This document shows positions 23,272 through 55,046 of a DNA stretch of 64,000 nucleotides, one piece after another (position 1 is the first letter of the stretch; the number at the start of each line of letters is the position of its first letter). The notes below the pieces were generated by a model. That model was given only the letters and a program-made list of their open reading frames with translations. It was not told where the DNA came from and ran no database searches. Position numbers and translations under genes: made by a program. The DNA is taken from positions 947,367 through 1,011,366 of the forward strand of contig JAHRHZ010000166.1 of NCBI GenBank assembly GCA_024137785.1, in the 5' to 3' direction. Source of the DNA: Ginglymostoma cirratum (Eukaryota).

Positions 23272-23433
23272 TTAAATAGTCCTGAACACAAGCTTCCTAT
23301 TGCTTTCTGAATGACAGATAACAGGAGAAGTGGTGTTCCAAACATCATAATCTGCTTCAGCTGATGAATGGTCGTTTCTCTTCACTGTCAGTGTCTTGAA
23401 TCTGCAGTCAATGCCAGCATTGGCATACAGTAT
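23272..23433 (-). CDS. Terminal cytoplasmic exon with two Tyr motifs
   Basis: ttcttccacag| then ILYANAGIDCRFKTLTVKRNDHSSAEADYDVWNTTSPVICHSESNRKLVFRTI*. Phase 0 matches the preceding donor, and a polyA signal lies downstream. Confidence 0.65.
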   Translation of the reverse strand: MLYANAGIDCRFKTLTVKRNDHSSAEADYDVWNTTSPVICHSESNRKLVFRTI

Positions 23434-24065
23434 CTGTGGAAGAATGAATACAAAGAAATCACACAAGGAAGAAGCAGTGGTCTTTCAACATTTGGTGATA
23501 ATTCTCCCATTCAGGTAGATCATATACGATTTTTATTCTCATGCACACATAATGGTTTCCAGTGCCCACTGACATTAAACAAAATGGCAGTAGAAATGGT
23601 TCCAGATCTCTTCTCTCTCCTGTGTACACAGCCGTTTTCTGAATGTCATGAAATAATGTTCAGGAATTATCTGTGATATCAGTGTTCAACAGAAAACAGC
23701 TTCTCTCTTTATAACTGACCAAATGACATAAACAGATTAATCATCACAAGTAGATCGTGTATTTCCATCCTTTACAGCCAGGGATAATTTCAAAACCTAC
23801 TTAACTAGTTCTGATAATGCAACAGTTTGAATAGTGTAATCATTTCATCGAAGCACCATTCTCGAATTAGATATAGTTATTGCTTGTAAATGACCAGATT
23901 TATACAGGTAGCTAAATTCAGTTCTACAAAAATGTTAAGTAGTGTAATTGTATTTGTTCATCGACTTGTGCCGCTGTTGATTGAATTTTGTACCTGCTAA
24001 ACTGAGTTTTATTAAACAAGTGAAAGGCTATTTCAGGTATTAAAAAGAACTCTTTGTACATTTAC

Positions 24066-24124
24066 CTCTTGTTTATGCTTACGTGCTTGCCAATCTTTGG
24101 TTCTCTTATCCATGTTCCAGTTCC
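24066..24124 (-). CDS. Exon: first cytoplasmic exon
   Basis: catcag|...gag|gtaaat, 59 nt, phase 1 to 0. Translates (G)NWNMDKRTKDWQARKHKQE. An alternative internal donor (gcac|gtaagc) is also possible. Confidence 0.6.
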
Positions 24125-24257
24125 CTGATGTAACAACAAATAAGCATCAAAATATCACGCTGATTGTTTTAATTAACGCGTAAATGTCAAAGAAAATGCT
24201 TGCACACGGTTGGGGATTAGGGAATGTTGCGTTACAGCAAACGTGGACACTTCCTAC

Positions 24258-24371
24258 CTGAGTCCCATTTTCTGTATGTCCATCCTGCAGTGACAGCAAA
24301 CACCAACAGAAGAATCATCATCACCATCAAAGTCCCATAACACATGAATTGGTTAGTGGTCTGTGGCTGTC
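24258..24371 (-). CDS. Exon: stalk + transmembrane helix
   Basis: tgttttcag|...|gtagga, 114 nt. Translates (G)QPQTTNQFMCYGTLMVMMILLLVFAVTAGWTYRKWDS: an uncharged hydrophobic stretch followed by RK. Confidence 0.82.
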
Positions 24372-25624
24372 CTGAAAACAAATGAGCAAAATAAAAACGT
24401 TTAGTAACCACAAGCTAAGCCATCAAGCAATTGCAGAAATAGCGAAAAAGACCACCAATGAATCATAATGTCATTGCACATATTTTTGCTCCCTCTTTTC
24501 TGCATGAACATAAATTCATCCTATCACTCTGACATGTCTCAATACACTTGTATCAATCTGACTCTTTTCCAAGATCTAATCCCTGTTGTGGAATGTAAAA
24601 GCATCAATAGTTCTACCAGCGAAGCAATTTAATGTCTTTTTTTCCTATTTAGACCTCCTCCCTGTTTCTTGACAATCATCACGCTTTTTAGTTACGTCCC
24701 CATTCCTCTTTAGCAAATAACAACTAAATCTTTCCCTCCAAAGGTCTTGCTGGGCAGCAGACAAAATATTTCTGGAATTTGATGCACTTTATCTTTGGTT
24801 CAAACTTTTAAATGTACAGTCGTCCAACTTTGTGTTAAAGGTTCAATTCAACATGTTCAAAACTGCATTAACTTCAAAAATAAATTTTCTTCTAATTAAC
24901 CCAAGCATGGCAACAGCGATCCATAGAACGCCGCCACTTTCATTTGAACACAGAATGATAAAACTTTATCAAAAGCATATTAACGTTCAATTACATTATA
25001 GCCAGCCTCTCTGGTATTAAAAGAGTTGCCCATTTTTCATTTTGTTATTTTGTTCTGCTACTAATTTTGAGTTACATGATGGAAATAACAGATAGGCTCT
25101 GGGACAGCTTTGAAAAAAGGGAAATAACAGATCAGATAAGTTTTTTTGTCAGGCCCCGCCTTGAGGTTAATCGCAGTCTGACATTGACTTTTTTTAAAAG
25201 GCTACTCACCGACACAGCCATCCCAGGGAAAAATTTCTGTGTTCGAAAACAGAGCAGAAGGTGGCTGTTAACGAGGGTAGTGCCTGACAGTTGTTTCCAG
25301 CAAGTCGGAAAGAGATCCAGTATTCAAACAGACAGCAATTTTTGAATGCTGACTGAGGCCTCGGGCAGTGTCAATCAGTCAATCCAGGTGGAACCAGAAT
25401 TAAAGATTTTTTTCCTGAAATATCAATTTCTGAGAGATTGTACAGAAATGCTGCTCTACAGCAAGATGATTGCAATCTCCCCTGCTGACCTGGTGCTCCA
25501 ACTTCCAGAAGCTCAAAGAAAAGAAATGCAGAATTATTGCTGGCTTTGCCTGGGAGAACTGAGGTGACGCTAATCAACGTTTCAGAAAAATAGGAGTCCA
25601 TGTTGGACTTGAAGCCCCAATACA

Positions 25625-27426
25625 ATTGCATCCCCCATGCAGATGGACTAAAGGATCTCTGCTTGTTTCTGTCCCGCAGGCCCAACCAGTCCCCCTCCAC
25701 TGACACTCTCATCCGCTGAGCTGAACTCGTACTCACCCTCAACAACTACTCCTTCAATTACTCCCACTTCCTACAAACAAAGGTGGTGGCCATGGTTACC
25801 CGCATGGGCCCAAGCTATGCCTGCTTCTTTCTAGGATACATGGAACAATCCCTCTTCCGTAGTTACACTGGCCCCATCCCCCACTTCTTCCTCCATTACA
25901 ACAATGACTGTATCGGTGCCTTCTCGTGATCCCATGAGGAGCTCGAAAAGTTCACCCACTTCACTAACACCTTCCACCCGAAACTTAAATTCTCCTGGAC
26001 AATCTCCGATACCTCCCTCTACTTCCTGGACCTCTCTATTCTCATCTCTGGCAAACACTTGGAAACCGATGTCCATTTCAAGCCGACTGACTCCCACAGC
26101 TACCGAGAGTACACCTCCTCTCACCCACCTTCCTGCAAAAAGTCCATCCCCATTCCCAATTCCTTCGTGTCCACCGCATCTGCTCCCGAGATGAAGCATT
26201 CCACTCCCAGACATCCCAGATGTCCTCGATTTTCAAGGACCTCAATTTCCCCTCCACAGTGGTCAAAAATGCACTCAACCGTGTCTCTCACATTTCCCAC
26301 AACTCATCCCTCACAACCCCTCCCTGCAATAACAGCCAAAACAGAATCCCCCTCGTGCTCACATACAATCCCACCAACCTCTGGATCCAACGCAGAATCC
26401 TCTGACACTTCCATCATCTGCAATCCGACCCCTAACCCTACCCCTAACCCTATCACAACCTTATCGGCTTTCAGGAGGGACCACTCTCTCCATGACTCCC
26501 TTGTCCGCTCCACACTCCCGTCTAACCCCATCACACCTGGCACTTTACCCTGCAATAGCAGCAAGTGCTACACCTGCCCCTACACCTCGCCCCTCACCCC
26601 CATCCCAGGCCCTAAGAAGACCTTCCACATCAAACAGATGTTCACCTGCACATCTGCTAATGTGGTATACCGTATCCGCTGTTCCCGTTGTGGCCTCCTC
26701 TACATTGGGGAAACCAAATGGAGGCTTGAGGACCGCTTTGTGGAACACCTACGATTGGTTCACAACAAACAACTGCACCTCCCAGTAGCAAAGAATTTCA
26801 AGTCCCCCTCTCACTCCTTGAATGACATGTCCATCCTGGGCCTCCTGCAGTGCCACAACAATGCCACCCGAAGTTAAGTTAAGTTAAGTTAAGTTAAAAT
26901 AAAAACTAAGGAGGAACAGCAATTCATATTTCACTTGGGAACCCTGCAGCCCAATGGTATCAATGTGGTCTTCACAAGCTTCAAAAGCTCCCCTCTCCTG
27001 AACGCATCCCAAAACCAGCCCAGCTCATAGCCGCCTCCCTATCCTGTCCTCCCACCTATCCACTCCTCCCACCTCAAGCCCCACTCCCATCTCCTCCAGA
27101 GTAGCCTCATCCCACCTCCCTGACCTGTCCGTCCTCGCTGGACCGAACTATCCGCTCCCTAACTCACCTTTACTGGCCCCAACCCCGCCTCCTTGACCTG
27201 TATGTCTCCTCTCCACCTATCTTCTCCTTTATCCATCTTCTGTCCGCCTCCATCTCTCTCCCTTTTTGTTTCAGAGCTCCCTTCCCCTTCCCCATTTCTG
27301 AAGAAGTGTCTAGACCCGAAACGTCAGCTTTCCTGCTCCTCTGATGATACTTGGCCTGCTGTGCTCATCCAGCTCTACACCATCTTATCTCAGATTCTCT
27401 AGAATCGGCAGTTCCTACTATCTCTG
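25625..27426 (+). mobile_element. 5'-truncated Penelope-like element (RT C-term, GIY-YIG, tail)
   Basis: NVVYRIRCSRCGLLYIGETK; same family as the 46-58 kb copies; hammerhead core at 27298-27325. Confidence 0.92.
26871..26896 (+). repeat. (AAGTT)5 microsatellite inserted in PLE
   Basis: Direct reading; absent from sibling copies. Confidence 0.9.
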
Positions 27427-29109
27427 TCCATATTTATCCCTGTGAACACTGCATCGTAAAGCATATTTAGGCAATCTAGCCAGTTTTGATATTTTATTTT
27501 ATTTATCCCTTTACTGTTTGCTGACTATCTTATGTGTCAATGTGGAAAAAAACAAATGCTTCAGGTTTGGAGCATAGATGTTAACCATCAGGTGGTACTA
27601 TTTGATCCTTGTTTTGCTAAAGTCAGTTTTATTTCATTAATGGTTTACCCTTTCTTTAAGATTCAAATCTGGTGCCTAGAGATTAAGTATCTATGAAATC
27701 TGGGATTGTTTATTCAAAAGTCTTGTTAGGAACCATTGGTCTGAATCTTTGAGGACTTTCTAATGGTTTAGGTTCACTGTGTCGCAAATACATTGGTAGA
27801 AATGATGCTTTGGTTCAGTTGTCTGTCTCTGTGTCGTAAATCGTAAACTCAAAACTTGGACCTTTAAAAACAGGCTTTTTTGGTTAAGAATTGGATTTTA
27901 GTATTTCGAGTACGTCATCAGACACAAGGTTTGTACACATAAGTAAGATGGAAATTGTCAGTGTTTTCGAACATTTGGAAAGTTTCCCTGATATGCTTGA
28001 AGGGTATGACAAAACCTGAAATAGTAGACTTAACAATCATTCCGGAAAAGGAAGGTTGCTTACAAAAGCAAAGAAGACATCATGTTTAATAATGAGTTGT
28101 GTTTAATGGAAGTAGAGCGGCTAGGTGATTTAGGCCATATACAAGATGCATTAGTAAACTTTAAGTTGCAGTTCAGGTAAACAGAATTGTGAACCATTAG
28201 TATGACTTCCAATATGTGAGAAAAATGAAGGGAATTCCAAAAAACAGCTGGAACTTTAATCTTAAAAAAATTGGAACAAAGAGAGACAGAAAGCTAAGAA
28301 AGAGAGAGAGAACAGGAATTTAAGTTAAAATAAAAACTACGCAGGCTCAGCAACCTAAACAAAATATTTGGGAAAACGTGAAATGAGAAGGTTCCAGTCA
28401 CAACCTACAATTCAGTTTAGAGAAGTTCAAGTTTGCTCAGACTTTGCCAAAACGTGAAGAGAAAGATGGAAAAGGTCACCCAGTTCTTCACTCGTTATGG
28501 TCTTCCAAATTGAGTACTGGCTGATCAAGGTTCAAACTTTATATCAAGACCATCTCAAGATTTCATCAGTAGTTTAGGGATTCAACTTTCATCATCCACT
28601 GACCCAAGGTAGTTTGGAGGGATATAACCAAACTCATTCAAAGTCTATAGTTATGAGAATGCAAACAACTGGAACAAACTATGAGATTTTCTCTTATCTA
28701 CAACCAGAGTTTATCTTAACGAATGTATCCACCTTAGGCCCATTTAAATTAGCTTATGGCTACGAAGTAAGAAGACCATGAATACTGATTAGGGATAAAT
28801 TGCTAGGCCAGTCAAACCAATGGCCAATGTTATAATCATATATCTACATTTCTCAAAAAGTTAATAGGAGCATGTAGAGTTGCACAGGAACATTAAAAAA
28901 AAACCTCACAACACAATATGAAGGAGTGGGTCCATAAAGGGTGGCAACCAGAAATGTTAAAACAGGAGATGACTTTCTCTACAGCTGACTATACAAGTTG
29001 AACCAGCAAAATTGAAATTCAATGGCTCCAACAGAATAGGTAAAATGAATTATCTGCGTAATCTGCTAATTGGCACTCCTGATTTTAAGGGAAAAAAAAG
29101 ATATTTATG

Positions 29110-30225
29110 TCAGGATCCTAATTATTGACTACCGTTCTGCGTTTAACATCCTAATTCTAATCAAACTCATCTCTAAACTCTGAGACCTATATCTCGGTCT
29201 CCCACTCTTTAATTGGATCCTGAACTTCCTGATCCGTAGACCGCAATAAGTAAGAATAGTCAACAGCAAATTCTCCACCATAATCCTCAACGCTGGTATC
29301 AGTTGGCTGCTTACACTCCCACCCACACATACTTCTTCTACTCTCACGATAATGTGGCCCAATTCAGACCCAGCTCATTTTACAATTTTGCTGTCAAAAG
29401 CACCGCTGTTGGTCAGATCTCAAACAACGACGAGGAAGAATACAGGAAAGGGGTTGAGTGCTTAGTGGCATGGTGAAAAAGAACATTCCATAAATATCCT
29501 CAAAATAAAGGAAGTGGTCATTGACTTCAGAACACTGAGTGAGGGGTATACTCCCATCTGCATCAACCGTGCTGAGATAGAGATAGTTGACAGCCCCAAG
29601 TTCCTGGTGGTAATTAGCACTAACAATCCGTCCTGGTCCACCTGTATTGATGCAGCGGTGAAGGAAGCACAGTAATTGTTTTCATTCCTCAGGAATCTAA
29701 GTAAATTCGGCATATTCTCAAGTTTTCTTACAACTTTTACAGGTTCACCATAAAATACATTCTATTGGGATGCATCAGAGCATGGGTTGCCAACTGTTCT
29801 TCCCAAGACCACAATAACCGACAGAGAGTAATGAAAACAGTCCAGTCGAACACACAAACCAGCCTTCCATTCATTGACTCATTGTATACTTTCGACTGCC
29901 TCGAGAAAGCCGCCAACATTACCAAAGACCCCTTCCAACCCGGATATACTCTCTTCCACTCTCTGCCCTCGGGCAGAAGACACAATTGTTTGAATGAACG
30001 AACAAGTAGATACAAGAAGAGTTTCTTTCCCACTGCTTTCAGACTTTTGAACAAATTCTCAGATGTAAGCGTTGATCTCTCTCTCTGCACCTTTTTGGCG
30101 GATCTAACACTATATTGTGTACTCTTTTCTGCTACCCTAATGCATTTTGCATGGTAAAACCTGCCTGGATAGCACAAAAAAAATTTTCACTGTATCCCAG
30201 TACATGTGATAACAATGAATCAATC
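29110..30225 (+). mobile_element. Rex1/Babar-type LINE 3' fragment
   Basis: RPQ.VRI..., ILLGCIRAW and HSLPSGRR...RTSRYKKSFFPTAFRLLN motifs; aatc tail. Confidence 0.7.
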
Positions 30226-30248
30226 AGACTGTGTCATGCAAGTATCAT

Positions 30249-30561
30249 CATAGAATCCCTACAGTGTGGGAGCAGGCCCTTCAGCCCAACAAGTCCACAC
30301 TGGCCCTTAGAGCATCCCATGCAGACCCATTTACCTATCAGCTACTTAACCTACACATCCCTGAACACTACGGGCAATTTAGCATGGCCAAACCACTGAG
30401 CGTGCGCATCTTTGGACTGTGAGGAGAGGAAAGCAGAGCACCTGGTGGGAAGTCACACAGACACGGGGCAAATATGCAAACTCCACACAGGCAATTGCCT
30501 GAGAGCGGATTTGAACCCACGTTCCTAACATTGTAAAGCAGCAGTTCTAACCACTGAGCCA
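30249..30561 (-). mobile_element. HE1-like SINE
   Basis: Reverse complement of the 14.6/58.5 kb SINE. Confidence 0.85.
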
Positions 30562-30832
30562 AAGCATTATTGTCGAGGCAGTAATGAGCATGTACAGACG
30601 TGGCAATTAATAATTTGGCAGAAGAGGATTAAAAAAGAATAAGAGCGAAGATAATTAGACTACTTCTAAATCTCTGAATATTTGAATAGCAAATTTGGAT
30701 ACCTGGAGAATTCAGACATTGTACTAACATAAACAACAACCAAAAGAACTGCAGATGCTAGAAATCAGGAACAAAAATAAAGTTGCTGGAAAAGCTCATC
30801 AGGTCTGGCAACATCTGTGAAGGAGAAAATAG

Positions 30833-30870
30833 AGTTAACGTTTCGGGTCCAGTGACCCTTCCTCAGAACT
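30833..30870 (-). ncRNA. Minimal type I hammerhead ribozyme motif in PLE-derived short repeat
   Basis: AGUU-CUGAGGA-A-GGGUC(ACUG)GACCC-GAAAC-GUU-AACU: core boxes, 5-bp stem II, AGUU/AACU stem I, palindromic ACGU in place of stem III. Confidence 0.6.
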
Positions 30871-31295
30871 AACATACCTGTATTAACATACCTGAAGAAA
30901 GATTTATCGACAGAAAATTTGAGATTGCTGAACAAATATGAACAATTTTGCAATTATATATATTTTGATGTACAACATTAGCCTGACCTGACTTGGATAT
31001 AGGTAATTCGTATTCAATAAAACAAAACCCACAAGGGTTAAATCCAGAGGAACGTACTAAAGTAACAGGAATTTTAATACACAATCAAGAATCAATTGAT
31101 CAAACCAAGCCTGAGTATTTAGAATTCACCTGCCATATTGGTTCCTAATTCAAATGTTTGAATTAAAATACATGCAGACTGTAGGAAAAAATATGTGCAT
31201 TAACAAAGACACTTTCATACCTTAGGCCAAGACTGGAAGATTGCATTCATAGGGTTGGCAATGCATCATTCTTCTCTAAAATTGATTTACTAATA

Positions 31296-31632
31296 GGCGG
31301 TACAATGCCTTAATGGTTAGCACTGCTGCCTCACAGCACTAGGAACATTTGTTCAATTCCAGCCGGGGTAACCGTCTCTTGTAGTTTGTGTGTTCTCCCC
31401 CTATCTGCATGGTTTTTTGTTGGGACCTCCAGTTTCCTCTCACAGTCCAAAATATGCAGGTTAGGCGAATTGGCTGTGTAATATGGTCCCATAGAATTCA
31501 GGGATGTGTAGTTTAGATGGGTTAGATGTTGTAAATTCAGCGTTATGGGGATATAGTAAACTGTGGCTATGGATGGGATGCTCTTTGGTGCAGACTCAAT
31601 GAACCAAATGGCTTCCTTCTGCAATTACAGAT
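31296..31632 (+). mobile_element. HE1-like SINE (diverged)
   Basis: tggttagcactgctgcctcacagc...gttcaattcc head. Confidence 0.8.
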
Positions 31633-32849
31633 TAAATTATATTGGCAAATATTGCTGACAATGACAGTAAAGGATATTTATGAATTTGTCACACCTAATG
31701 GATTTTACCAATGTTGAGTTATGCCATTTGAATATTGGAATACACCAGACACCTTTCAATGATTAGTGAATAGCATTATATTTAAGGTGCCTAATCGTTC
31801 AGTTTATTTGGACAACAACGTCATGCAGAATAATACATGGAAGAAACACAGAGTAGAGATAAATCTTATTTACACAATTATAGTCAGTCATGCTGGTTTT
31901 AAAGGTAGCAAAGATTGATTTTGCACAAAGCAAGGTGGTGTACCTCGGCCATATTGTTAGGTAACAAAAGAAGTGGTGGCTGCAATTGATTTTATCACGC
32001 TGAAAACAAAATGGAAAATAAGAGGGTTCTTGGGAATGTGTGTCTTTAATTGAAAGCTTGTAATTATTTTAGTACAATTGACTTTCCTTCGACTAATGTA
32101 CAATGTAAATAAATGAAGATGGTTGGTCTACAGGTTGCTAGGCAATCTTTGACAAGCAAGAAGCAATTTTACTGAATGAACCTATATTAGCTAGACCTAT
32201 TTTAACAAACCATTTAAATTTGCAGTGGATGCTAACAACTTTGAAGTTCAAAAAGAATTCTCACAGGATGATAAGCTTATAATGCAAAAGCCCACTGCTA
32301 ATTTTCGCATGAAAGTGAACAGAAGATATTTAACACTCTGTGATTGAGAAAGGACCATTGGTAGTGTTAACAGTTCTTCAAAATGTTGACGTTTATGTCA
32401 GAAGTGGGCATTTTGAAGCCGTTAGTCTTACTGACTATCCACCCTCTGAGTTTTTTTGATACGTTAAAAACATGAAACTTCATTATTGTTGACACATGAT
32501 GTCATGTCTGCAGCAGTCTACATTAAAAAAAAACTTTACATACAGCCAAGAATTTTTTAAAAAGTGCAATTGCAGTTTTCTCATCCCAAATGTAAACTGC
32601 TATACATTGAAGAACGTGACCAGGAGAACTGAAAGATGAATAAGTATCTGGTGCATGGAAGAATGGATGTAAGTTCTGAATTTTGCTTGTGTTCTCATTG
32701 TTACAAACCTCGTCATGAAAAAGACTTTCTTTAATTTGGGTTTTATGTCTTTGAGGTTCAAAACATCTCTTTTCATTGCTTTAGTTTTATTCCTTTGTTG
32801 ATATTGAATGGAAGTGACTGCTGAGTTTATACCATTAGTTCCACTGATG

Positions 32850-33200
32850 TTAGAGTAGAGTTAGGTCATTCGGCTGGTCGAGCCTTTTCCAACATTCAAC
32901 CATTCCCCTGTCTTCTCTCTGTAAACCTCTAGGGAGTTACCAATCAAAAAATATATCTATCGCTACCTTAAATACACTCAATGACTTGACCTGAAGATCC
33001 CTCTGTGCAATGGATACCACAGATTAATCACCCTCTGTTTGACGAAATTTCTCCTCATATCATTCTAAAGTGTCAGTCGTTCGCTCTGAAATTGTGCTCC
33101 AGGGTGCAAGTCTCTCCTTCTCGTGGAAACATCTTCTCCACATCCACTCTATCCAGGCTTCTCAGTTTCCTTCAAGCTTCAATCAGACCCTCCCCCATCT
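32850..33200 (-). mobile_element. CR1 LINE 3' fragment
   Basis: Reverse complement of CR1 ORF2 end and 3' UTR. Confidence 0.6.
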
Positions 33201-33336
33201 CTGCTGATGATCTGATGATCAGACAATCGATATGTTTGGAAAGCGGGGCAAAACTTTGGAGATGTACAGTGGCATTGATATTAATTACATCGCTCATAAA
33301 CATTAAAACACAAATGAAATTACATTCAATATGTAC

Positions 33337-33639
33337 CTCTTTGATATGAGACACTTTCGCTGATGAGAGTTCTAGTAGAGGTGATTTGAGCGGAGCAAGT
33401 GATGGCAGCTTCTTTCCTCGACTCTTTTGTTCGAATTCCAAAATGACTTCTCATGCTATATGTCCCGGTGGAGTCGATTGTCCCAGTATCTGGCCAAAGT
33501 TCGACATCCCACATGGAAGCAGTCCAACGGGTGTGGAGTGTACGCGTGATAACATTTTTCACCAAACATATCAATGAAACATTTTCCACGGAAAACGTTT
33601 TATCCACCGGTGGAGATAAGAGAAATATCTCGGCAGCTC
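33337..33639 (-). CDS. Exon: Ig C1-set-like domain
   Basis: Translates (G)AAEIFLLSPPVDKTFSVENVSLICLVKNVITRTLHTRWTASMWDVELWPDTGTIDSTGTYSMRSHFGIRTKESRKEAAITCSAQITSTRTLISESVSYQR. C-x13-W spacing, GTYSxxS motif and second Cys present. 303 nt, phase 1-1, 87-bp intron from the V exon. Confidence 0.85.
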
Positions 33640-33726
33640 CTGATGGGTGTGGAAGATGAGAAGGAAATACTGTTCAGAATTCCTGATTATTTAAGGCGAA
33701 ATTAGTAAAACAGTATTAGTGCTTAC

Positions 33727-34065
33727 CTGTTATGAACAATTTCGAACCATTTCCGAATATGAAGGGTATTCTGTTAATTTTTCTAGCTGCACAGTAATAT
33801 TAACCGGAATCATTTTTCTGGACGTTAGCAATCACAAGAGTACAAACCGTAGAGTCGTTATTAACTTCTCCAGAATATCTCCCATGTGGTGGAAAGTACT
33901 TGGTCACGGTGTAAACGCTTTGCATATGTTCTTGCTGCTGCTGTTTATACCACTGAACAGAGAGATTGGCGACCCAACCTGTGTGGCAGTGAAACCTAAC
34001 AACACTTCCAACTGAGACAGTTTCAACTGTTGGAGCCTGTGAGAACACTGTTTGACAGACAATAA
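33727..34065 (-). CDS. Exon: Ig V-set domain with germline-joined J-like segment
   Basis: Translates (V)IVCQTVFSQAPTVETVSVGSVVRFHCHTGWVANLSVQWYKQQQQEHMQSVYTVTKYFPPHGRYSGEVNNDSTVCTLVIANVQKNDSG*YYCAARKINRIPFIFGNGSKLFIT. Contains B-strand Cys, WYKQ, RYSG, DSGxYYC and FGxG. Acceptor ttttttcag, donor ag|gtaagc, 339 nt. Confidence 0.92.
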
Positions 34066-34336
34066 CTGAAAAAAATGACGTTAAAGAGCGTTGTTAGGCA
34101 AAATGAATTTTTGTCAAGAAATATCAAAATCAACAAATTATCTGCTAAGGAAAACGGGACAAACATCATATCATTTTACAATAGAGAAACGGGATGCGCA
34201 ATTTTTGTCTATTTCAGAGACTTTTCACAGCAATATGAACATTACAAGGAGAGCTCATTTGACCTTCCACCAAGCTGAAGCTATTTGTGATATTACGCAG
34301 GAACTAGTGCACAGATTATAATCTAGAAACGCTAAC

Positions 34337-34378
34337 CTGAAAGAAATTGGAACATTGTACACGGAGTTAGAAAATCAT
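34337..34378 (-). CDS. Candidate leader exon (1-nt frameshift relative to first ATG)
   Basis: atgattttctaactccgtgtacaatgttccaatttctttcag|gttagc. Adding one T to the T4 run gives MIFLTPCTMFQFLS in phase 1. An in-frame internal ATG at 34355 gives only MFQFLS. Confidence 0.5.
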
Positions 34379-34402
34379 TCTCTACAGCGAATATTCTTGC
34401 TG

Positions 34403-34495
34403 TGACGTTTGCACTGACGTTTCAATTTTGTTTTGAAGCTGAAGCAGAGAAGTTATGCTTTGAACTGCACAGCTGATCCAAGGCGTGCAGGAAGT
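34403..34495 (-). promoter_or_regulatory. Candidate proximal promoter motifs (tandem CRE-like, E-box, ETS)
   Basis: TGACGTTT at 34403-34410 and 34415-34422, CAGCTG at 34470-34475, CAGGAAGT at 34488-34495, all immediately upstream of the leader ATG. Confidence 0.35.
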
Positions 34496-35139
34496 TAAAA
34501 ATAGCCGAATGGAAAATATAGCACAACGTTTGGGATTGCTGTCTGTTTCCCGTTTACACTTCAAGCGTGCACTCATTTGCCTCCGAGCAACTGCAAACCA
34601 AATACAATTTTCTTTCAACTTGTGTCAAACAGATTTTGGCACTTCTTTTACAGGCTGTGAAAAAATAATCCAAATCATTCACAGTTTCTTCATTGAAGCA
34701 ACAATGTATTCCTTCTGCTGAGACATTAAACAAAGCCTACTCCATATAATTCCAGGTTGAAGTTCAGATCAGATGTTCAATTAACACTCAAATAGTGCAG
34801 GTGCATTTTGCTGATTGTTTTGGGATATTTATTTTTCCTTGTGGCATTATGATGATGAAACCCGTGTTAATTAATATATTGCATTTTGGACGAGAAAATA
34901 AAAATCCGCAGGAAATAAAAGTCCTAAGAACTGTGGATCCTGGAACTCAGAAACAAAAGCAAAATAAAAAAGGAGACGTAGTTGGAAAACTTAGCTTTCT
35001 TACAGCATCTGTGGATAAGAAATCAGAGTTGACGTTCTGGACCCAGTGCTCCTTCTTCAGAGTGATTCTGTGAAGGACCACTGGATCCAAAACGTTAACT
35101 CATAGCTGTTGTGATTTTCCAATAATTATAATTTTTGTT

Positions 35140-45100: not shown

Positions 45101-46456
45101 GCAAGTCAGTCAGAGAAAGGATGTGTTGTGGGTAGCAGTAGGAGGTCATTTAGGATGTCAGAAAAGCGCAAGCCAACATACAAAAGAAACATTTTTACTG
45201 GCCTGGACTGCAATAGGATTTAGTTGAACTTTGCCAGACATGTAATACATAAAAGATCCTTCAATTTGATACGGCAATGTATGGGTGAGTGAATGTTTTT
45301 TTTTTCTCTTATGCGTGTAATGTATCAGGAAATGTGTTATTACCAAAGTAGGAATTGGTATTTGTTGACAATAAGGAATGTGTCCACTAGAGGGTAAATC
45401 CACATTTGATATGTGGGAGGATTTTAAAGAGAGGTTGATTAGAGTACGGGGCAGACATGTCCCTGTGAAAATGAGGGATAGAAAGGGCAAGATTAGGGAA
45501 TCATGGATGACAGGTGAAATTGTGAGACTAGCAAAGAGGAAAAAGGAAGCATACATAAAGTTTAGGCGACTGCAAACAACTGAGCTTTGGAAGAATATCG
45601 AGAAATTAGGACCGATATGAAACGAGGAATTAAGATGGCGAAAATGGGTCATGAAATATCTTTGACAAAGAGGGTTAAGGAAAATCCCAAAGCCTTTTAT
45701 TCATACATAAGGAGCAAGAGGGTAACTAGAGTAAAGGTTGGCCCAATCAAGGACAAAGGAGGGAAGTTATGCATGGAGTCAGAGAAAATGAGTGAGATTC
45801 TTCTTGAGTACTTTGCGTCGGTATTCACTGAGGAGAGGGACATGACAGATGTTGATGCTAGGGATAGATGTTTGATTACTCGAGGTCAAGTCAGCATAAG
45901 GGGGGGGAGTGTTGGGTATTCTAAAAGGCAATAGGGTGGACAAGCTCCCAGGTCCAGATGCGATCTATCCCAGTTCACTGAGGGAAACGAGAGAGGAAAT
46001 AGCTGGGGCCTTAACAGATATCTCCGTAGCATCCTTGAGCACGGGTAAGGTCCTGGAGGACTGGAGAATTGCTAATGTTGTCCCCTTGTGTAAGAAGGGT
46101 AGCAAGGACAATCCAGGTAATTATAGAGCGGTGAGCCTGACGTCAGTGGTGGGGAAACTGCTGGAGAAGATACTGAGGGATAGGATCTATTTATATTTGG
46201 AAGAAAGTGGGCTTATTACTGATAGGCAGCATGGTTTGTGCAGGGAAGTTCATGTCTTATCAAATTGATAGATTTCATTGAGGAAGTGGCAAAGTTGATA
46301 GATGAGAGAAGGACTGTGGATGTCATTTACATGGACTTCAGTAAGGAGTTTTATAAGGTTCCCCATGGAAGGCTGATTGAGAAAGTGTAGTCACATGGGG
46401 TCCAGAGTATACTAGCTAAATGGATAGAGAAGTGACTGGGCAACAAGAGACAGAGA

Positions 46457-48842
46457 TAAAAGATACTGCAGATGCTGGAGAATCCGAGATAACAAGCATG
46501 GGGCTGGATGAACACAACAGGTCAAGCAGCATCATAGGAGCAGGAAAACTTGATATTCCGGGCCTAAACCCTTCATCAGAAATGGGGGAGGGGAAGAGGG
46601 TTCTGAAATAAATAGGGAGAGAGGGGGAGGTGGAGGGAGGATGGAGAGAGGAGAGGATAGGTGGAGAGGAGGCAGACAAGTCGAAGAGACGGGGATGGAG
46701 CCAGTAAAGGTGAGTGTAGGAAGGGGGGTAGGGAGGAGATATGTCAGTCCAGGGAGGACGGACAGGTCAAGGGGGTGGGATGATGTTAGTAGATAGGAGA
46801 TGGGGGTGTGGCTTGAGGTGAGAGGAAAAACCGGTTAGGGAGGTAGAGATGAGCTGGGCTGGTTTTGGGATGTGGTTGTGGGAGGGGAGATTTTGAAGCT
46901 TGTGAAATCCACATTGATGCCGTTGGGCTGCAGGGTTCCCAGGCTGAATATGATTTGCTGTTCCTGCAGCCTTCGGGTGGCATCGCTGTGGCATTGCAGG
47001 AGGCCAAGGATGGACATGTCATCTGAGGAATCGGAGGGGGAGTTGAAATGGTTCGCGACTGGGAGGTGCAGTTGTTTGTTGCGAACTGAGCGCAGGTGTT
47101 CTGCAAAGCGGTCCCCAAGCCTCCACTTGGTTTCCCTGATGTAGAGGAAGCCACAACGGGTACAGCGGATGCAGTAGACCACATTGGCAGATGTGCAGGT
47201 GAACCTCTGCCTGATGTGGAAAGTCTTCTTGGGGCCTGGAATTGGGGTGAGGCAGGAGGTGTGGGGGCAGGTGCAGCACTTCCTGCGGTTACAAGGAAAA
47301 GTGCCAGGTGTGGTGGGGCTGGAGGGGAGTGTGGAGCGGACAAGGGAGTCGCGGAGGGAATGGTCCCTCCGGAAGGCAGATAAGGGTGGGGAGGGAAAAA
47401 TGTCTTTGGTGGTGGTGTCTGATTGCAGATGGCGGAAGTGTCGGAGGATGATGCATTGGATCCGGAGGTTGGTGGGGTGGTATGTGAGGACGAGGGGGAT
47501 TCTTTTTTGGTTATTGTTGCGGGGACGGGGCGTGAGGGATGAGTTCCGGGAAATGCGGGAGACACGGTCGAGGGCGTTCTCGACCACTGTGGGGGGGTGG
47601 AATTAGCGGTCCTTGAAGAATGAGGACATTTGAGATGTGCGGGATTGGAATGTCTCATCCTGGGAGCAGATGCGGCGGAGGCGAAGGAATTGGGAATAGG
47701 GGATGGCATTTTTGCAGGAGGGTGGCTGGGAGGAGGTGTATTCCAGGTAGCTGTGGGAGTCAGTGGGCTTGAAATGGACATCTGTCTCTAGGTGGTTGCC
47801 AGAGATGGAGACAGAGAGGTCCAGGAAGGAGAGAGAAGTGCTGGAGATGGTCCAGGTGAACTTCAGGTTGGGGTGGAAGGTGTTGGTGAATTGGATGAAC
47901 TGTTCGAGCTCCTCGTGGGAGCACGAGGCGGCGCCGATGCAGTCATCAATGTAACGGAGGAAGAGGTGGGGATAAGGGCCAGTGTAGGTACGGAAGAGGG
48001 ATTGTTCCACATAACCTACAAAGAGGCAGGCATAGCTTGGGCCCATGCAGGTACCCATGGCCACCCCCTTTGTCTGTAGGAAGTGGGAGGAATTGAACGA
48101 AAAGTTGTTGAGGGTGAGGACGAGTTCGGCGAGGCGGATGAGGGTGTCGATGGAGGGGGATTGGTTCGTTCTGCAGGACAGGAAGAAGCGGAGGGCCTTT
48201 CGGCCATCAGCATGGGGAATACAGGTAAATAGGGACTGGACATCCATAGTAACAATGAGGTGTTGGGGACCTGGAAATTGGAAGTTCTGGAGGAGGTGGA
48301 GGGCGTGGGTGGTGTCACCTACGTAAGTAGGGAGTTCCTGGACCAAGGGGGTGAAAATGGAGTCTAGGTAAGTGGAGATGAGTTCGGTGGGGCAGGAGCA
48401 GGCGGAGACAATGGGTCGACCAGGGCATTCATGTTTGTGGATTTTGGGGAGGAGATAGAAGCGGGCGGTGCGGGGTTGGGGAACGATGAGGTTGGAGGCG
48501 GTGGGTGGGAGGTCACCTGAGGTGATGAGGTTGTGGATGGTTTGGGAGATGATGGTTTGGTGCTCGGGGGTGGGGTCATGATCTAGGGGGTGGTAGGAGG
48601 TGGTGTCAGAGAGTTGGCGCCTGGCCTCAGCAATGTCGAGGTCAGTGCTCCATTCTACAACTGCCCCTCCCTTGTCCGCGGGTTTGATGGTGAGGTTGGG
48701 ATTGGAGCGGAGGGAGCAGAGGGCTGCACGGTCTGCGGGGGAGAGGTTGGAGTGTTTGAAAGGCGTAGAGAGGTTGAGGCGATTGATGTCTCGATGGCAG
48801 TTGGAGATGAAGAGGTCGAGGGAGGGTAGGAGGCCTTGGGGT
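46457..48842 (-). mobile_element. Penelope-like element, left inverted arm
   Basis: GVAMGTCMGPSYA, FLRYIDD and NVVYCIRCTRCGFLYI motifs; complete 3' tail. Confidence 0.95.
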
Positions 48843-49350: not shown

Positions 49351-51917
49351 CGCAGACGTAACCCCGCCCACAGCCTCCACAGCCAGCAGCTCCAGAGGAG
49401 ACAGCAACACTGAGCCCTGCCGAGTATTCACCATCCCCTCAGACCTCCCCCTTTCTGAGGACGAACGGTCACTCCTCAGTAAAGGGCTCACCTTTGTCCC
49501 CGTCCACCAACATATCAACGAATACCGCTCACGCTTGGATATTGAGCAGTTTTTCCGCCGCCTCCGCCTCCACGCTTACTTCTCTCACCGCGAAACTAAC
49601 CCTCCCTCTACTGACCCCTTCTCCTGCCTCCAACACAAGCCCTCCTCCTGGACACCACCCCAAGGCCTCCTACCCTCCCTCGACCTCTTCATCTCCAACT
49701 GCCGTCGAGACATCAATCGCCTCAACCTCTCTACCCCTCTCAAACACTCCAACCTCTCCCCCGCAGAACGTGCAGCCCTCTGCTCCCTCCGCTCCAATCC
49801 CAACCTCACCATAAAACCTGCGGACAAGGGAGGGGCAGTCGTAGTATGGCGCACTGACCTTGACATTGCTGAGGCCAGGCGCCAACTCTCTGACACCACC
49901 TCCTACCGCCCCCTAGATCATGACCCCACCCCCGAGCACCAAACCATCATCTCCCAAACCATCCACAACCTCATCACCTCAGGTGACCTCCCACCCACCG
50001 CCTCCAACCTCATCGTTCCCCAACCCCGCACCGCCCGCTTCTATCTCCTCCCCAAAATCCACAAACCTGAATGCCCTGGTCGACTCATTGTCTCCGCCTG
50101 CTCCTGCCCCACCGAACTCATCTCCACCTACCCAGACTCCATTTTCACCCCCTTGGGCCAGGAACTCCCTACCTACGTCCGTGACACCACCCACGCCCTA
50201 CACCTCCTCCAGAACTTCCAATTCCCAGGTCCCCAACATCTCATTGTTACTATGGACGTCCAGTCCGGATACACCTGTATTCCCCATGCTGATGGCCGAA
50301 AGGCCCTCCGCTTCTTCCTGTCCCGCAGAACGGACCAATCCCCCTCCACCGACACCCTCATCCGCCTAGCCGAACTCGTCCTCACCCTCAACAACTTTTC
50401 TTTCAATTCCTCCCACTTCTGACAGACAAAGGGGGTGGCCATGGGTACCTGCATGGGCCCAAGCTATGCCTGCCTCTTTGTAGGTTATGTGGAACAATCC
50501 CTCTTCCGTTCCTACACTGGCCCTTATCGCCACCTCTTCCTCCGTTACATTGATTACTGCATCGGCGCCGCCTCGTGCTCCCACGAGGAGCTCGAACAGT
50601 TCATCCAATTCACCAACACCTTTCACCCCAACCTGAAGTTCACCTGGACCATCTCCAGCACTTCTGTCTCTTTCCTGGACCTCTCTGCCTCCATCTCGGG
50701 CAACCACCTAGAGACAGATGTCCATTTCAAGCCCACTGACTCCCACAGCTACCTGGAATACACCTCCTCCCAGCCACCCTCCTGCAAAAATGCCATCCCC
50801 TATTCCCAATTCCTTCATCTCCGCCGCATCTGCTCCCAGGATGAGACATTCCAAACACCGCACATCTCAAATGTGCTCATTCTTCTAGGACCGCTACTTC
50901 CCCCACACAGTGGTCAAGAACGCCCTCGACCGTGTCTCCCGCATTTCCCAGAACACATCCCTCACGCCCCATCCCCGCAACAATAACAAAAAAAGAATAC
51001 CCCTCGTCCTCACATACCACCCCACCAACCTCCGGATCCAACGCATCATCCTCCGATACTTCCGCCATCTGCAATCAGACCCCACCACCAAAGACATTTT
51101 TCCCTCCCCACCCTTATCTGCCTTCCGGAGGGACCACTCCCTCCGCGACTCCCTTGTCTGCTCCACACTCCCCTCCAGCCCCACCACACCTGGCACTTTT
51201 CCTTGTAACCGCAGGAAGTGCTACACCTGCCCCCACACCTCCTGCCTCACCCCAATTCCAGACCCCAAGAAGACTTTCCACATCAGGCAGAGGTTCACCT
51301 GCACATCTGCCAATGTGGTATACTGCATCCGCTGAACCCGTTGTGGCTTTCTCTACATCAGGGAAACCAAGCGGAGGCTTGGGGACCGCTTTGCAGAACA
51401 TCTGCGCTCAGTTCGCAACAAACAACTGCACCTCCCAGTCGCGAACCATTTCAACTCCCCCTCCGATTCCTCAGATGACATGTCCATCCTTGGCCTCCTG
51501 CAATTCCACAGTGATGCCACCCGAAGGCTGCAGGAACAGTAAATCATATTCAGCCTGGGAACCCTGCAGCCCAATGGCATCAATGTGGATTTCACAAGCT
51601 TCAAAATCTCCCCTCCCACAACCACATCCCAAAACCAGCCCAGCTCATCTCCACCTCCCTGACCTGTTTTTCCTCTCACCTCAAGCCACACCCCCATCTC
51701 CTATCTACTAACATCATCCCGCCCCCTTGACCTGTCCGTCCTCCCTGGACTGACCTATCTCCTCCCTACCCCCCTACCTACACTCACCTTTACTGGCTCC
51801 ATCCCCGCCTCTTCGACTTGTCTGCCTCCTCTCCACCTATCCTCTCCTCTATCCATCCTCTATCCACCTCCCCCTCTCTCCCTATTTATTTCAGAACCCT
51901 CTACCCCTCCCCCATTT

Positions 51918-51945
51918 CTGATGAAGGGTTTAGGCCCGAAACGTC
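51918..51945 (+). ncRNA. Minimal hammerhead ribozyme motif
   Basis: CUGAUGA-A-GGGU(UUAG)GCCC-GAAAC-GUC. Confidence 0.55.
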
Positions 51946-54900
51946 AAGTTTTCCTGCTCCAATGATGCTGCTTGACCTGCTGTGTTCATCCAGCCCCATG
52001 TTTGTTAACAAGAGACAGAGAGTTGTAGTGGAAGGGAGTTTTTCAAAATGGAGATCCGTGACCATTGGTGTTCCACAGGGATCCGTGTTGGGACCCCTGT
52101 TGTTTTTGATATAAATAAACGATCTGGAGGAAGGTATAGATGGTCTGATTAGCAAGTTTGCAGATGACACGAAGATTGGTGCAGTAGCAGATAGTGAAGG
52201 GAACAGTCGGAGAATGCAGCAGAATACGACAGATTGGAGAGTTTGGCAGAGAAATGGCAGATGGATTACAATCGAGGCAAATGCAAGGTAATGCATTTTG
52301 GAAGATCTAATTCAAGAGTGAACTATATACGGTAAATGGAAAAGCCCTGGGGAACTTTGATGCACAAAAAGATCTGGGTGTTCAGTTCCTTTGTACCCTG
52401 TAGGTGGCAACGCAGGTCGGTAGAGTGGTCAAGAAGGCATACGGCATGCTTTCATTCATTGGACGGCGTATTGAGTACAAAAGTTGGCAGGTTATGTTAC
52501 AGTTGTAGGACTTTGGTTCGATCACATTTGGAATAGTGCATACAGTTCTGGTTGCCACATTACCGAAAGGATGTGGATGCTTTGGAGAAGGTGCAGAGGA
52601 GGTTCACCAGTATGTTGCCTGCTATGGAGGGCGCTAGCTATGAAGAGAGGTTGAGTAGATAAGGATTATTTACATTAGAAAGACGGAGATTGATGGGGGA
52701 CCTGACTGAGGTCTACAAAATCATGAGAGGTATAGACAGGGTGGATAGCAAGAAGTTTTTTTTTTCCCAGAGTGGGGGACTCAATTACTAGGGGTCACTA
52801 TTTCAAGGTGAGAGGGGAAAAGTTTCAGGGAGGTATGCATAGAAAGTTCTTTACACAGAGAGAGGTGGGTGCCTGGAACGAGTTGTCAGTGTAGGTGGTA
52901 GAGGCAGGTACGATAGAGTCATTTAAGATGTATTTGGACAGACACATGAATGGGCAGGGAGCAGAGAGATACAGATCCTTGGAAAATAGGTGACAGGTTT
53001 AGATAGAGGATCTGGATTGGCGCAGGCTTGGAGGACCGAACGGCCTGTTCCAGTGCTGTAATTATCTTTATTCTTTGTTCTTTGTCCTAGAATACCAGTG
53101 GCTGTTGCATTACGCAGCATCACAGCTAAAAGGATTGTGGAAGAGTTACTCTTTTCTTTTCTGTAGGCACAGGCTACTCACAGAGATACAATCAGATCAA
53201 GGATCAAATTTTGCATCATAATTATTCAGGGAAGTTATGGATAGCTTAGAAATAAAACAATTCAAATCCATTGAGCAATGTCCAGATTGTCCGGGAATGC
53301 TCGAAAGGCGGCATCAAAATTTAGAGACCATCTTAAGCGCTTATCGTCAAGACTATCCAGATAATTGGGATAAAGAAATTCTGCTTGAACTTTTTGTCTT
53401 TAGGGATGCACCAAATTAATCAACCAAATTCAGTCCATTTGAATTGTTTTTTGTTCTGCACGAGGTGAGAGGACAAATGAAATTAATTCAAGAGAAATTA
53501 GTGAGTCAGAATTCAGAGACAACATGATTGGACTACGTGTATAAATTTCGGGAATGATTAAATATTGTGGGTGAGTTGGTCAGACAGCATTTAAAACTAC
53601 TACAGCACATGATGAAACAGGAATCAGAGAAGCAATCAAACACTCACAATTTTGCTAAATGAGATAAAGTATTAATCTTACTTCCATTTGTAGGTGAACC
53701 TTTAAAAGCAAGCTTTAGTGGGCTGTATCAAATCAAAAGGATATTGAGTGAGATTGTCTATTTAATAAAGACTCCAGATAGAAAGAATTCTGACAGAGTG
53801 TGCAATGTCACGGTGCTCGAATGGTATATTGATAGTAAAAGAAAGAAAAAGGAGATTGTGTTATTGGTTATAACACAGAGTGATGGACCATCCTCAGAGG
53901 ATTTTGAACTTGACCTTCATCAAATTAAGAAGAAAAACAAAGTTGGTGGAAAAGCTCATCAGGTCTGGCAGCATCTGTGGAGGAGAAAACAGAGTTAACG
54001 TTTTGGGTCCAGTGGCCCTTCCTCAGAACTGTGAATGGGGAGATATGTGAGAATGAGCTGAGAAGTACTATTTTAACATTGCATGATGTAGGTATAAGGA
54101 ATGCTGTTCCAATTAAGCGATATCCTTATCAATGTAACCCTCTAATGTTGGCACAAGTTCAAAAAGAGATTGAACGCCTGCTCCAAGACAACGTAATCAA
54201 AGTGAGTTGCAGCGACTGTAGCTCGCCCATAGTAAAGATACCGAAACCAGGTGATAGCCAATGATTACCTGTAGATTTTTGCAAAGTGAATGCAGTTGCA
54301 AAGTCTGGTTCATGACCGACTCCACGTTTGGAAGGCTGTATTGAGAAGTTGGAACAAGCAACTTATATTTCTAAGTTGGAAATATTCAGAGAACTTTGCA
54401 GGTACCTTTATCCAAAAGATTGAAGACCAGTTCGGTTTTTGAAACATTGGATGACCTCTGGCAATCTGAAGACATGCCCTTTGATTTGGGAAGTGAACCA
54501 GCTAATTTCAAAGACTAACCAATTCAGTCATTTCTAGATTACCCAATCGCATTGTCTCCATCGACGACCTGTGATTATTAGTCAGGCGTGGAAGGAACAT
54601 ATGCATCATTTTTTAGAATTATTCAATCAACTTTGGGAAGCAGGTTTGGTGATAAACCTGGCTAAGAGTGAAATCGCCAAAGCCCAAGTCACGTTCCCGG
54701 CTCATGTTATTGGACATGGACAGAATGTGAAAACAAAGGTAATTGGGGAGTTTCCCATACCATCGTTGAAGACAGCAGTACTACGTTTTCTAAGATTGAA
54801 TAGATTTTTTTGGAAATTTGCATCGAATTTTAACAGTGTGTTTTCTCCACTGATTGATGTATTGAAGAAGTACAGGAAATTTCACTGGACGATAGACTGT

Positions 54901-55046
54901 CAGAAGGCATTCGACAGTTTGTGTGAAACAGCGCCCCAGTATTATGCACGCATAATTATGGAAAGTCATTCAAGATGGCTAGCAATGCGACTGATGTTGG
55001 TGTCTGTAGTGTACTCTTACCAGAAGTCGACAAGAAGATAAAAAGA

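Follow-up and report, generated by a model that had tools for sequence, protein, structure and literature searches.

A probable pseudogene of a non-rearranging VJ-C1 membrane receptor family in Ginglymostoma cirratum

Introduction

PRARP genes, reportedly described by Fu and colleagues in 2019, are said to be non-rearranging VJ + C1 + TM genes that are found in bony fish, amphibians, reptiles and birds, though not in mammals. UrIg was reportedly described by Flajnik and colleagues in 2023. SIRP-alpha contains two C1 domains and several tail tyrosines. UrIg and UrIg2 have a non-rearranging single VJ exon, a split leader and C1-type domains, and UrIg2 of the nurse shark has nine C domains (PMC12227049).

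Here we describe a locus on the minus strand of a 64-kb stretch of Ginglymostoma cirratum DNA (the window) that is very probably a pseudogene, with three lesions, belonging to a family of type I membrane receptors that do not rearrange and have multiplied by tandem duplication. Its relatives form an unnamed elasmobranch VJ-C1-TM-ITIM family, examples of which are XP_048476236 (Rhincodon), GCB75501 (Scyliorhinus torazame), XP_062888102 (Mobula) and XP_055487220 (Leucoraja). We found no paper describing this family in cartilaginous fish.

The family resembles UrIg and UrIg2 in its non-rearranging single VJ exon, split leader, C1-type domains and retention in elasmobranchs; unlike them, it combines one C1 domain with an ITIM-like tail, and our sequence and fold matches showed no special closeness to them. 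As in SIRP (PTPNS1), the V domain has a J-like strand and precedes a C1-set domain, a TM segment and a tyrosine motif of inhibitory type, but family members of ~300 aa have one C1 domain and not the arrangement of a V and two C1 domains. The one-chain V-J-C1 ectodomain with a cysteine near the membrane recalls Ig light chains and TCR chains, from which the locus differs in having neither RSS nor separate J, a VJ-C intron of 87 bp and an ITIM-like tail of its own. Relatives matching the shark profile occur in frogs, turtles, crocodilians, squamates and birds, among the groups for which PRARP genes are said to be recorded.

Results

Organization of the locus

The locus comprises six exons encoding a leader, VJ, C1, TM and two cytoplasmic segments (Table 1). 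AG/GT dinucleotides were present at every splice site and the TM exon was matched by family proteins, in agreement with the original prediction of six spliceable exons in a type I membrane layout. The VJ segment is a single exon, carries CAARKINRIPFIFGNGSKLFIT and scored as V-set in Pfam (E 2e-9); the CDR3-like loop and J motif that had been proposed for it are both encoded there, and the proposed 87-bp intron between VJ and C1 was recovered to the base. A scan of positions 33000-34600 on either strand detected no RSS-like heptamer-nonamer and the J is fused to the V, which upholds the view that the gene is non-rearranging.

The TM and two cytoplasmic exons lie 8.9 kb downstream of the C1 exon, across an intron filled with a 1.8-kb Penelope-like fragment and short repeats. 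This fragment is ~80% identical to copies at 46.4-52.0 and 55.0-56.4 kb and contains a weak GIY-YIG match (E 0.00099) that falls under the Pfam cut-off. By tblastn with all fetched proteins, no second copy or fragment of the receptor locus was detected in the 64-kb window.

Table 1. Positions of the exons, introns and other features of the receptor locus within the window.
Feature	Position	Strand	Remarks
Leader exon remnant	34337-34378	-	ATG 34378-34376; codon 2 has two bases, 34375-34374; family-like leader FLTPCTMFQFLS at 34373-34338; donor G/GT, phase 1
In-frame ATG inside leader remnant	34353-34355	-	
VJ exon, 339 bp	33727-34065	-	Phase 1 at both ends; contains YYCAARKINRIPFIFGNGSKLFIT, CDR3-like loop and J motif FGNGSKLFIT; TAA inside
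TAA of VJ exon	33800-33802	-	In frame
VJ-C1 intron, 87 bp	33640-33726	-	GT...AG; length divisible by three, yet stop inside
C1-set constant-domain exon, 303 bp	33337-33639	-	Pfam, fold and tree evidence
Intron 3, 8.9 kb	24372-33336	-	Repeat-filled
Penelope-like fragment	25604-27428		Within intron 3
TM exon	24258-24371	-	Encodes QFMCYGTLMVMMILLLVFAVTAGW; membrane-proximal Cys and uncharged TM segment; ends AGWTYRKWDS
Cytoplasmic exon 1	24066-24124	-	Reads GNWNMDKRTKDWQARKHKQE
Last coding exon, family reading	23388-23433	-	ILYA, AATG 23421-23418, LALTADSRH, TGA 23390-23388
Read-through past family stop position	23272-23387	-	DHSSAEADYDVW within it, ending RTI-stop; presumably former 3' UTR

Domain assignment and homology

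Searches were made with single exons, the V exon being divided into two pieces flanking the TAA. Among solved structures, the best matches to the V piece were Ig light-chain V domains. The C1 exon matched the Pfam C1-set at 21.5 bits (cut-off 21), and its top match among solved sequences was an IgG CH3 domain (E 1.9e-8). A structure prediction had been called for in support of the C1 assignment; the AlphaFold model (pLDDT 80) gave IgY, IgE and IgM constant domains as its top fold matches (Z 13.4-11.8), and the exon is indeed C1-like. In the Atlas feature search, a SIRP (PTPNS1) cluster came nearest of the named clusters other than the query itself (0.95, rank 6), and when the C1 exon was compared, no SIRP chain appeared among the best 50 structural or best 60 sequence matches. 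When the family profile or a turtle relative was used to search PDB sequences, antibodies dominated the matches, such that SIRP, TCR and UrIg2 were not rankable.

Each part of the locus matched proteins of the elasmobranch family. Whale shark P0047 aligned over VJ and C1 by tblastn at 8.8e-71; the VJ exon was 62.5% identical to this Rhincodon protein and 63% identical to Scyliorhinus P0004. The C1 exon alone matched 23 proteins at E <= 0.001 (top 9e-16). For the TM exon, E values were 1.3e-5 against P0038 by tblastn and 2e-6 against P0039 and P0038 by blastp. Cytoplasmic exon 1 was 52.6% identical to Stegostoma P0054 over 19 aa and is equal in length to GNWNTDKKSTDFRPHDPKPE of P0049. Among the best ten matches, identities ranged from 53-63% for VJ and 42-49% for C1. 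The closest protein listed was 63% identical and therefore the databases searched contained no copy from the species itself. Further likenesses to the family include the exon plan, the FGNGSKL J motif, the C1-set domain, the cysteine before the TM segment and the GNW juxtamembrane exon. In the protein homologue searches there were family members only, named IgL, TCR, SIRP and UrIg sequences being absent.

In the C1 tree, the exon fell within a clade of orectolobiform sharks (SH-aLRT 95); tetrapod relatives alone served as the outgroup for both the V and C trees. Its terminal branch measured 0.67 compared to a median of 0.15 (4.5x the median), and part of this length may come from divergence between paralogues. 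Both domain cysteine pairs are retained, and the deviations at conserved columns (2/24 for VJ, 2/12 for C1) are inside the family range. The tryptophan of the 'ETW' motif is missing from C1; we weighed this as a mark of decay and discounted it, as the close intact proteins P0004 and P0047 also lack it.

Three lesions in the coding sequence

In contrast to the elasmobranch family, the reading frame of this copy is broken at three places, namely the leader, the VJ exon and the tail motif, and no open reading frame runs from leader to stop. The original prediction had treated the gene as a working receptor, mentioning a 'repaired' protein only in passing; the three lesions contradict this. In the leader, codon 2 is short by one nucleotide beside a T run, and the ATG at 34378 reads ATG ATT TTC TAA. 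With its frame shifted by one base, the leader is as long as those of whale shark P0047 and P0039 and shares their anchor residues (M, F, C-T, S-V). No alternative intact family-like leader exon was found up to position 38000. Loss of this frame alone need not be fatal, however, as a start at the internal ATG would yield a signal-like peptide of 15 aa, MFQFLSVIVCQTVFS.

In the VJ exon, a TAA stands in frame between DSG and YYC (DSG-stop-YYC), at a position occupied in family members by V, L, M, W, I, Q, R or S. This lesion is a substitution. The tail lesion is a 1-nt insertion outside a homopolymer: four bases, AATG, are present where one codon is expected within the ITIM-like motif. As the exon reads, the residue at Y+3 is Ala, the frame continues for 38 extra codons, and E-[TS]-x-Y-A-x-L with a stop ~8 codons further on does not occur. 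In the +1 frame, the sequence becomes ILYA-x-LALTADSRH-stop, in agreement with the family ending ExxYAxLAFTADPTL-stop; the tail thus shares the general form ExxYAxLAFTADxx-stop once the frameshift is read across. Because the family ending LALTADSRH-stop is found only in the +1 frame, the sequence indicates that an ITIM-like motif was ancestrally present and is now broken. Reading across both the leader and tail shifts restores family sequence and length, with a total of ~300 aa that equals the length of seven members. Hence the claim that the protein has its own signalling tail stands as far as the tyrosine motif is concerned, whereas the 53-aa last exon from which it was drawn overruns the family stop and is an artefact of the frameshift.

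We conclude that the copy descends from this family and is now very probably a pseudogene. Its core residues are hardly more degraded than those of intact members and its inactivation was therefore probably recent. The copy retains all its exons and splice sites together with most core residues. According to the model we favour, leader codon 2 has lost one nucleotide, framework 3 of the V domain has gained a nonsense codon and the ITIM has gained one nucleotide. It would no longer be able to make the receptor, as may be expected of a dead copy under birth-and-death evolution of a cluster.

Discussion

Any single one of the lesions may be an assembly error or a segregating null allele. It is distinctly unlikely, however, that the gene is intact and functional and that the stop and two frameshifts all reflect assembly errors or one null haplotype. 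The six exons, splice sites and both cysteine pairs are kept, deviation at the conserved columns stays inside the family range, and the leader deletion lies beside a T run, all of which would fit an intact gene; against this, three independent lesions of different kinds fall within ~900 coding bases, the TAA is a substitution, the tail insertion is outside a homopolymer, and the C1 branch is long. Very improbable is a functional but re-tooled gene that starts at the internal ATG and uses ADYDVW in the extended tail as a new signalling motif. The nonsense codon lies upstream of everything that such a product would need and would stop it, even though the frame is open for 53 codons and horn shark P0003 ends similarly in HSESASGYDVW, the extension being 38% identical to that protein along 26 aa (E 7e-4, with just 155 proteins in the database). 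P0003, whose TM segment is truncated, itself appears to have been modelled from a damaged copy, and the similarity is explicable by conserved 3' UTR DNA.

The two remaining alternatives assign the locus to other families, and both are extremely unlikely compared to a decayed member of the VJ-C1-TM-ITIM family. Germline-joined Ig light-chain clusters, and pseudogenes of them, are of a kind common in cartilaginous fish, the V piece is best matched by light-chain V domains among solved structures, and pipelines name the relatives 'light chain-like'. Yet homologous TM and tail exons follow C1 here, in place of the end of a secreted V-J-C chain; the VJ-C intron measures 87 bp; of the sequences from other families, heavy-chain constant domains come nearest to the C1 exon; and full-length relatives from sharks, rays, turtles, frogs and birds carry a TM segment and a YAxL-type tail. 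The original prediction of a gene other than a germline-joined IgL was correct. The other candidate is a UrIg or UrIg2 paralogue that has been truncated, these being the published antigen-receptor genes of sharks that do not rearrange; a single-exon VJ and split leader followed by C1-type domains are common to both (PMC12227049), and the C1 model can be aligned with a UrIg2 C1 domain (9dmx; Z 11.0). Nevertheless, 9dmx ranks 18th at 14% identity, behind many ordinary Ig constant domains, and is not among the best 60 sequence matches; moreover, nurse shark UrIg2 has nine C domains (PMC12227049) compared to the one of the elasmobranch VJ-C1-TM-ITIM family.

Intact members of this family have a split leader and then a single exon that codes for the whole V domain together with a J strand of its own (FGNGSKL). 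Next come a single C1-set domain, a cysteine close to the membrane and a TM segment free of charged residues, and the short tail closes with one ITIM/ITSM-like motif, E-[TS]-x-Y-A-x-L. In such proteins, ligand would be bound by the V domain, chains may be paired through the cysteine, and the tyrosine, once phosphorylated, would recruit SH2 phosphatases and so give an inhibitory signal. An inhibitory function of the family is suggested by the motif alone.

Relatives at 40-63% identity are present in at least 17 shark and ray species, with several per scaffold, and farther relatives in a chimaera, frogs, turtles, crocodilians, squamates and birds. Full-length shark and ray members have a TM segment and a YAxL / ITIM-like tail in every species checked. 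The matches of the shark profile in frogs, reptiles and birds are 300-aa VJ-C1-TM proteins with Y-A-x-[VL]-type tails, and shark and tetrapod members are 21-30% identical. The pipeline names of the relatives are 'Ig kappa/lambda light chain-like', 'Ig heavy chain Mem5-like' or 'uncharacterized'; for these names, the expectation that automated annotation would use an Ig light chain-like label proved right, and public annotation thus calls family members Ig or TCR chains, or misses them. The family is already in public databases as predicted proteins and reaches frogs, reptiles and birds; it is therefore no private, undescribed chondrichthyan invention. Of the proposal that the locus belongs to such a family, membership of a chondrichthyan multigene family holds, and the possibility of an undescribed family private to that group does not.

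A wider reading is that the dead copy and its relatives are the cartilaginous-fish branch of a PRARP-like family of non-rearranging VJ-C1 inhibitory receptors extending from sharks to birds, undescribed in sharks and expanded there into many-gene clusters, with V domains as close to Ig/TCR V as those of UrIg and UrIg2. We regard this as unlikely; if true, the family would be a third candidate relic of the pre-RAG receptor. That the family extends from a chimaera and sharks as far as frogs, reptiles and birds matters for deciding which non-rearranging genes can inform us about how antigen receptors arose, a question that calls for intact members and proper trees and not for this copy. As a decayed copy, the locus itself is of little weight. 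It helps to document large tandem clusters in sharks of germline-joined, single-chain VJ-C1 receptors with an inhibitory tail that gain and lose copies. In the hit tables, such clusters had at least 15 copies on one Heterodontus scaffold, six in Rhincodon and seven in Cetorhinus.

Exon structure and germline joining of the VJ exon

The gene comprises six exons on the minus strand, with an AG acceptor and a GT donor at every splice site in our reading of the DNA. The V exon also encodes the J strand, since YYCAARKINRIPFIFGNGSKLFIT lies within it; a heptamer-spacer-nonamer scan of 33000-34600 on both strands found no RSS. The original prediction of a germline-joined VJ lacking RSS was thus confirmed, as was its placement of an intron of exactly 87 bp between the VJ and C1 exons. 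It had also described exons hidden among repeats, in agreement with the 8.9-kb C1-TM intron (intron 3), which carries a 1.8-kb Penelope-like fragment and short interspersed repeats. These short repeats recur in the window at 14.7, 36.0, 53.9, and 58.5-58.8 kb, as copies of 73-91% identity.

Exons, lesions, and repeats (window positions)
Feature	Position	Strand	Size or content
Leader exon	34378-34337	-	42 bp
VJ exon	34065-33727	-	339 bp
VJ-C1 intron	33726-33640	-	87 bp
C1 exon	33639-33337	-	303 bp
TM exon	24371-24258	-	114 bp
Cytoplasmic exon 1	24124-24066	-	59 bp
Last exon	starts 23433	-	53 codons in the spliced frame
In-frame stop, VJ exon	33802-33800	-	TAA
Four bases for one codon, last exon	23421-23418	-	AATG
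Read-through	23272-23387	-	
Short interspersed repeats, intron 3	30250-30556, 30762-30870, 31314-31524		
Penelope-like fragment, intron 3	25604-27428		1.8 kb
GIY-YIG-bearing ORF	26059-26877		
Further Penelope-like fragments	46449-48223, 50253-51994		
Open frame	54956-57802	-	948 codons

Lesions in the reading frame

In the assembled sequence, the frame of this gene is broken three times, in the leader, the VJ exon, and the last exon. The in-frame TAA of the VJ exon reads DSG*YYC, and every relative has a sense codon at this position. The leader ATG at 34378 reads ATG ATT TTC TAA, while a family-like leader, FLTPCTMFQFLS, occupies the next frame and ends in a phase-1 donor, its Val codon being completed with the V exon. 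With a three-base codon 2, the leader would match the whale shark leaders MNFFILCTLVYIFSV and MNVLPLCTLFQLLSV in length and in the anchors M, F, C-T, and S-V. A search upstream to 38000 found no better leader exon. Since an internal in-frame ATG could still yield a short signal-like peptide, the leader lesion alone would not be decisive.

Splicing places the last exon in a frame that gives ILYANAGIDCRF…, and four bases stand in place of one expected codon; from the fifth codon, the +1 frame gives LALTADSRH followed by a stop. Because this matches the ending of intact relatives (…E-T-L-Y-A-H-L-A-F-T-A-D-P-T-L-stop), one extra base splits the tyrosine motif, turning Y+3 from Leu into Ala and opening read-through beyond the stop position of the family. 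The tyrosine-motif tail of the original prediction is this read-through after a one-base insertion. Reading across both frameshifts gives a protein of about 300 aa, and a length of exactly 300 aa is found in seven family members. Among positions conserved in 90% of the family, the copy deviates at 2 of 24 in VJ and 2 of 12 in C1, within the family range, and its decay looks recent.

The read-through, …DHSSAEADYDVW, resembles the C-terminus of P0003 (Heterodontus francisci XP_067878814, a horn shark family model without a proper TM segment), which ends …EHSESASGYDVW and a stop (38% identity over 26 aa). This likeness may reflect 3' UTR DNA kept between distant sharks or a common alternative tail.

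Domain identity

The V piece upstream of the stop matched Pfam V-set (E 2e-9), and Ig light-chain V domains were its closest solved structures. The C exon scored 21.5 bits against Pfam C1-set (cut-off 21), with IgG CH3 and other Ig constant domains closest by sequence among solved structures (E 1.9e-8). An AlphaFold model of this exon, built from a 40-row family alignment (pLDDT 80), aligned best with IgY, IgE, IgM, IgA, IgNAR, and IgG constant domains (Z 13.4 to 11), compared to Z 11.0 for a UrIg2 C1 domain and 10.9 for TCR C-beta. On the basis of the Pfam, sequence, and fold matches, the C exon is a C1 domain, as originally proposed, and a C2 or I-set domain is ruled out.

An elasmobranch receptor family

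Searched alone against 1.8 billion representative proteins, the C exon matched 23 of them at E 0.001 or better (best 9e-16, 42-45% identity). Its better matches, together with those of a profile search, are proteins of 290-320 aa that share a leader, a VJ domain with FGNGSKL, one C1, a Cys, a TM segment, and a tail ending E-[TS]-x-Y-A-x-L. Members occur in sharks (Rhincodon, Chiloscyllium, Hemiscyllium, Stegostoma, Scyliorhinus, Mustelus, Cetorhinus, Carcharodon, Heterodontus, and Pristiophorus) and batoids (Mobula, Hypanus, Leucoraja, and Pristis), with several copies per scaffold in each species among the profile-search matches. The names they bear in databases were guessed by pipelines: 'Ig kappa light chain-like', the type of label anticipated by the original prediction, 'Ig heavy chain Mem5-like', 'TCR alpha chain MC.7.G5-like', 'lachesin-like', and 'uncharacterized'.

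Profile searches further reached Callorhinchus fragments, many frogs, turtles, crocodilians, squamates, and birds, and, weakly, a single catfish; no mammals were among the matches. This range fits that reported for the PRARP family (Fu et al. 2019, cited in PMC10751288), and a possible identity with PRARP is a lead. A second elasmobranch subfamily (P0017 and P0057-P0067 among the fetched proteins) has a degenerate J (LQNGPTLLVG), extra cysteines in the V domain, one C1, and a TM segment ending IWIH. Its tail is long and basic and contains GGPxYASLEF. A single Heterodontus scaffold carries at least nine copies of this subfamily.

Within the window, tblastn with all fetched proteins detected a single copy, with the whale shark protein P0047 aligning across VJ and C1 at E 8.8e-71 and the distant TM exon supported at E 1e-5. 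Top identity to family proteins was 63% for VJ and 49% for C1. The V tree left the position of the copy unresolved, with P0047 as its nearest row and an end branch of 0.31 (median 0.19). The C1 tree placed it in a 14-row clade (SH-aLRT 95), the remaining 13 rows of which are all orectolobiform sharks, on an end branch of 0.67 (median 0.15); part of this length may be paralogue divergence. From this placement, the source of the genome is probably an orectolobiform shark.

Other receptor identities

A rearranging segment is ruled out by the fusion of J to V and the lack of RSS, and a germline-joined light chain by the TM and tail exons found here and in full-length relatives. SIRP received a feature-based hint of kinship from the Atlas feature search (score 0.95); no SIRP chain ranked among the top hits of the C1 exon by sequence or by fold. 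UrIg and UrIg2 are very unlikely identities: nurse shark UrIg2 has nine C domains (PMC12227049), and the sequence and fold matches showed no special similarity. In their expression, both UrIg and UrIg2 differ from a typical Ig or TCR gene (PMC12227049).

Proposed working of intact members

In intact members, the VJ domain would bind ligand, and chains may pair by way of C1 and the membrane-proximal cysteine. The uncharged TM segment would speak against ITAM adaptors, and the tail, through its single ITIM/ITSM-like tyrosine, would recruit SH2 phosphatases. The window copy would be capable of none of these functions.

Penelope-like elements

The 948-codon open frame had no Pfam match at E 0.001. 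Judged by eye, it appears to be a near-complete Penelope-like retroelement: it carries the RT motif YIDDCIG, and its C-terminal region resembles the GIY-YIG-bearing ORF. The Penelope-like fragment in intron 3 and the two further fragments are about 80% identical to this element.
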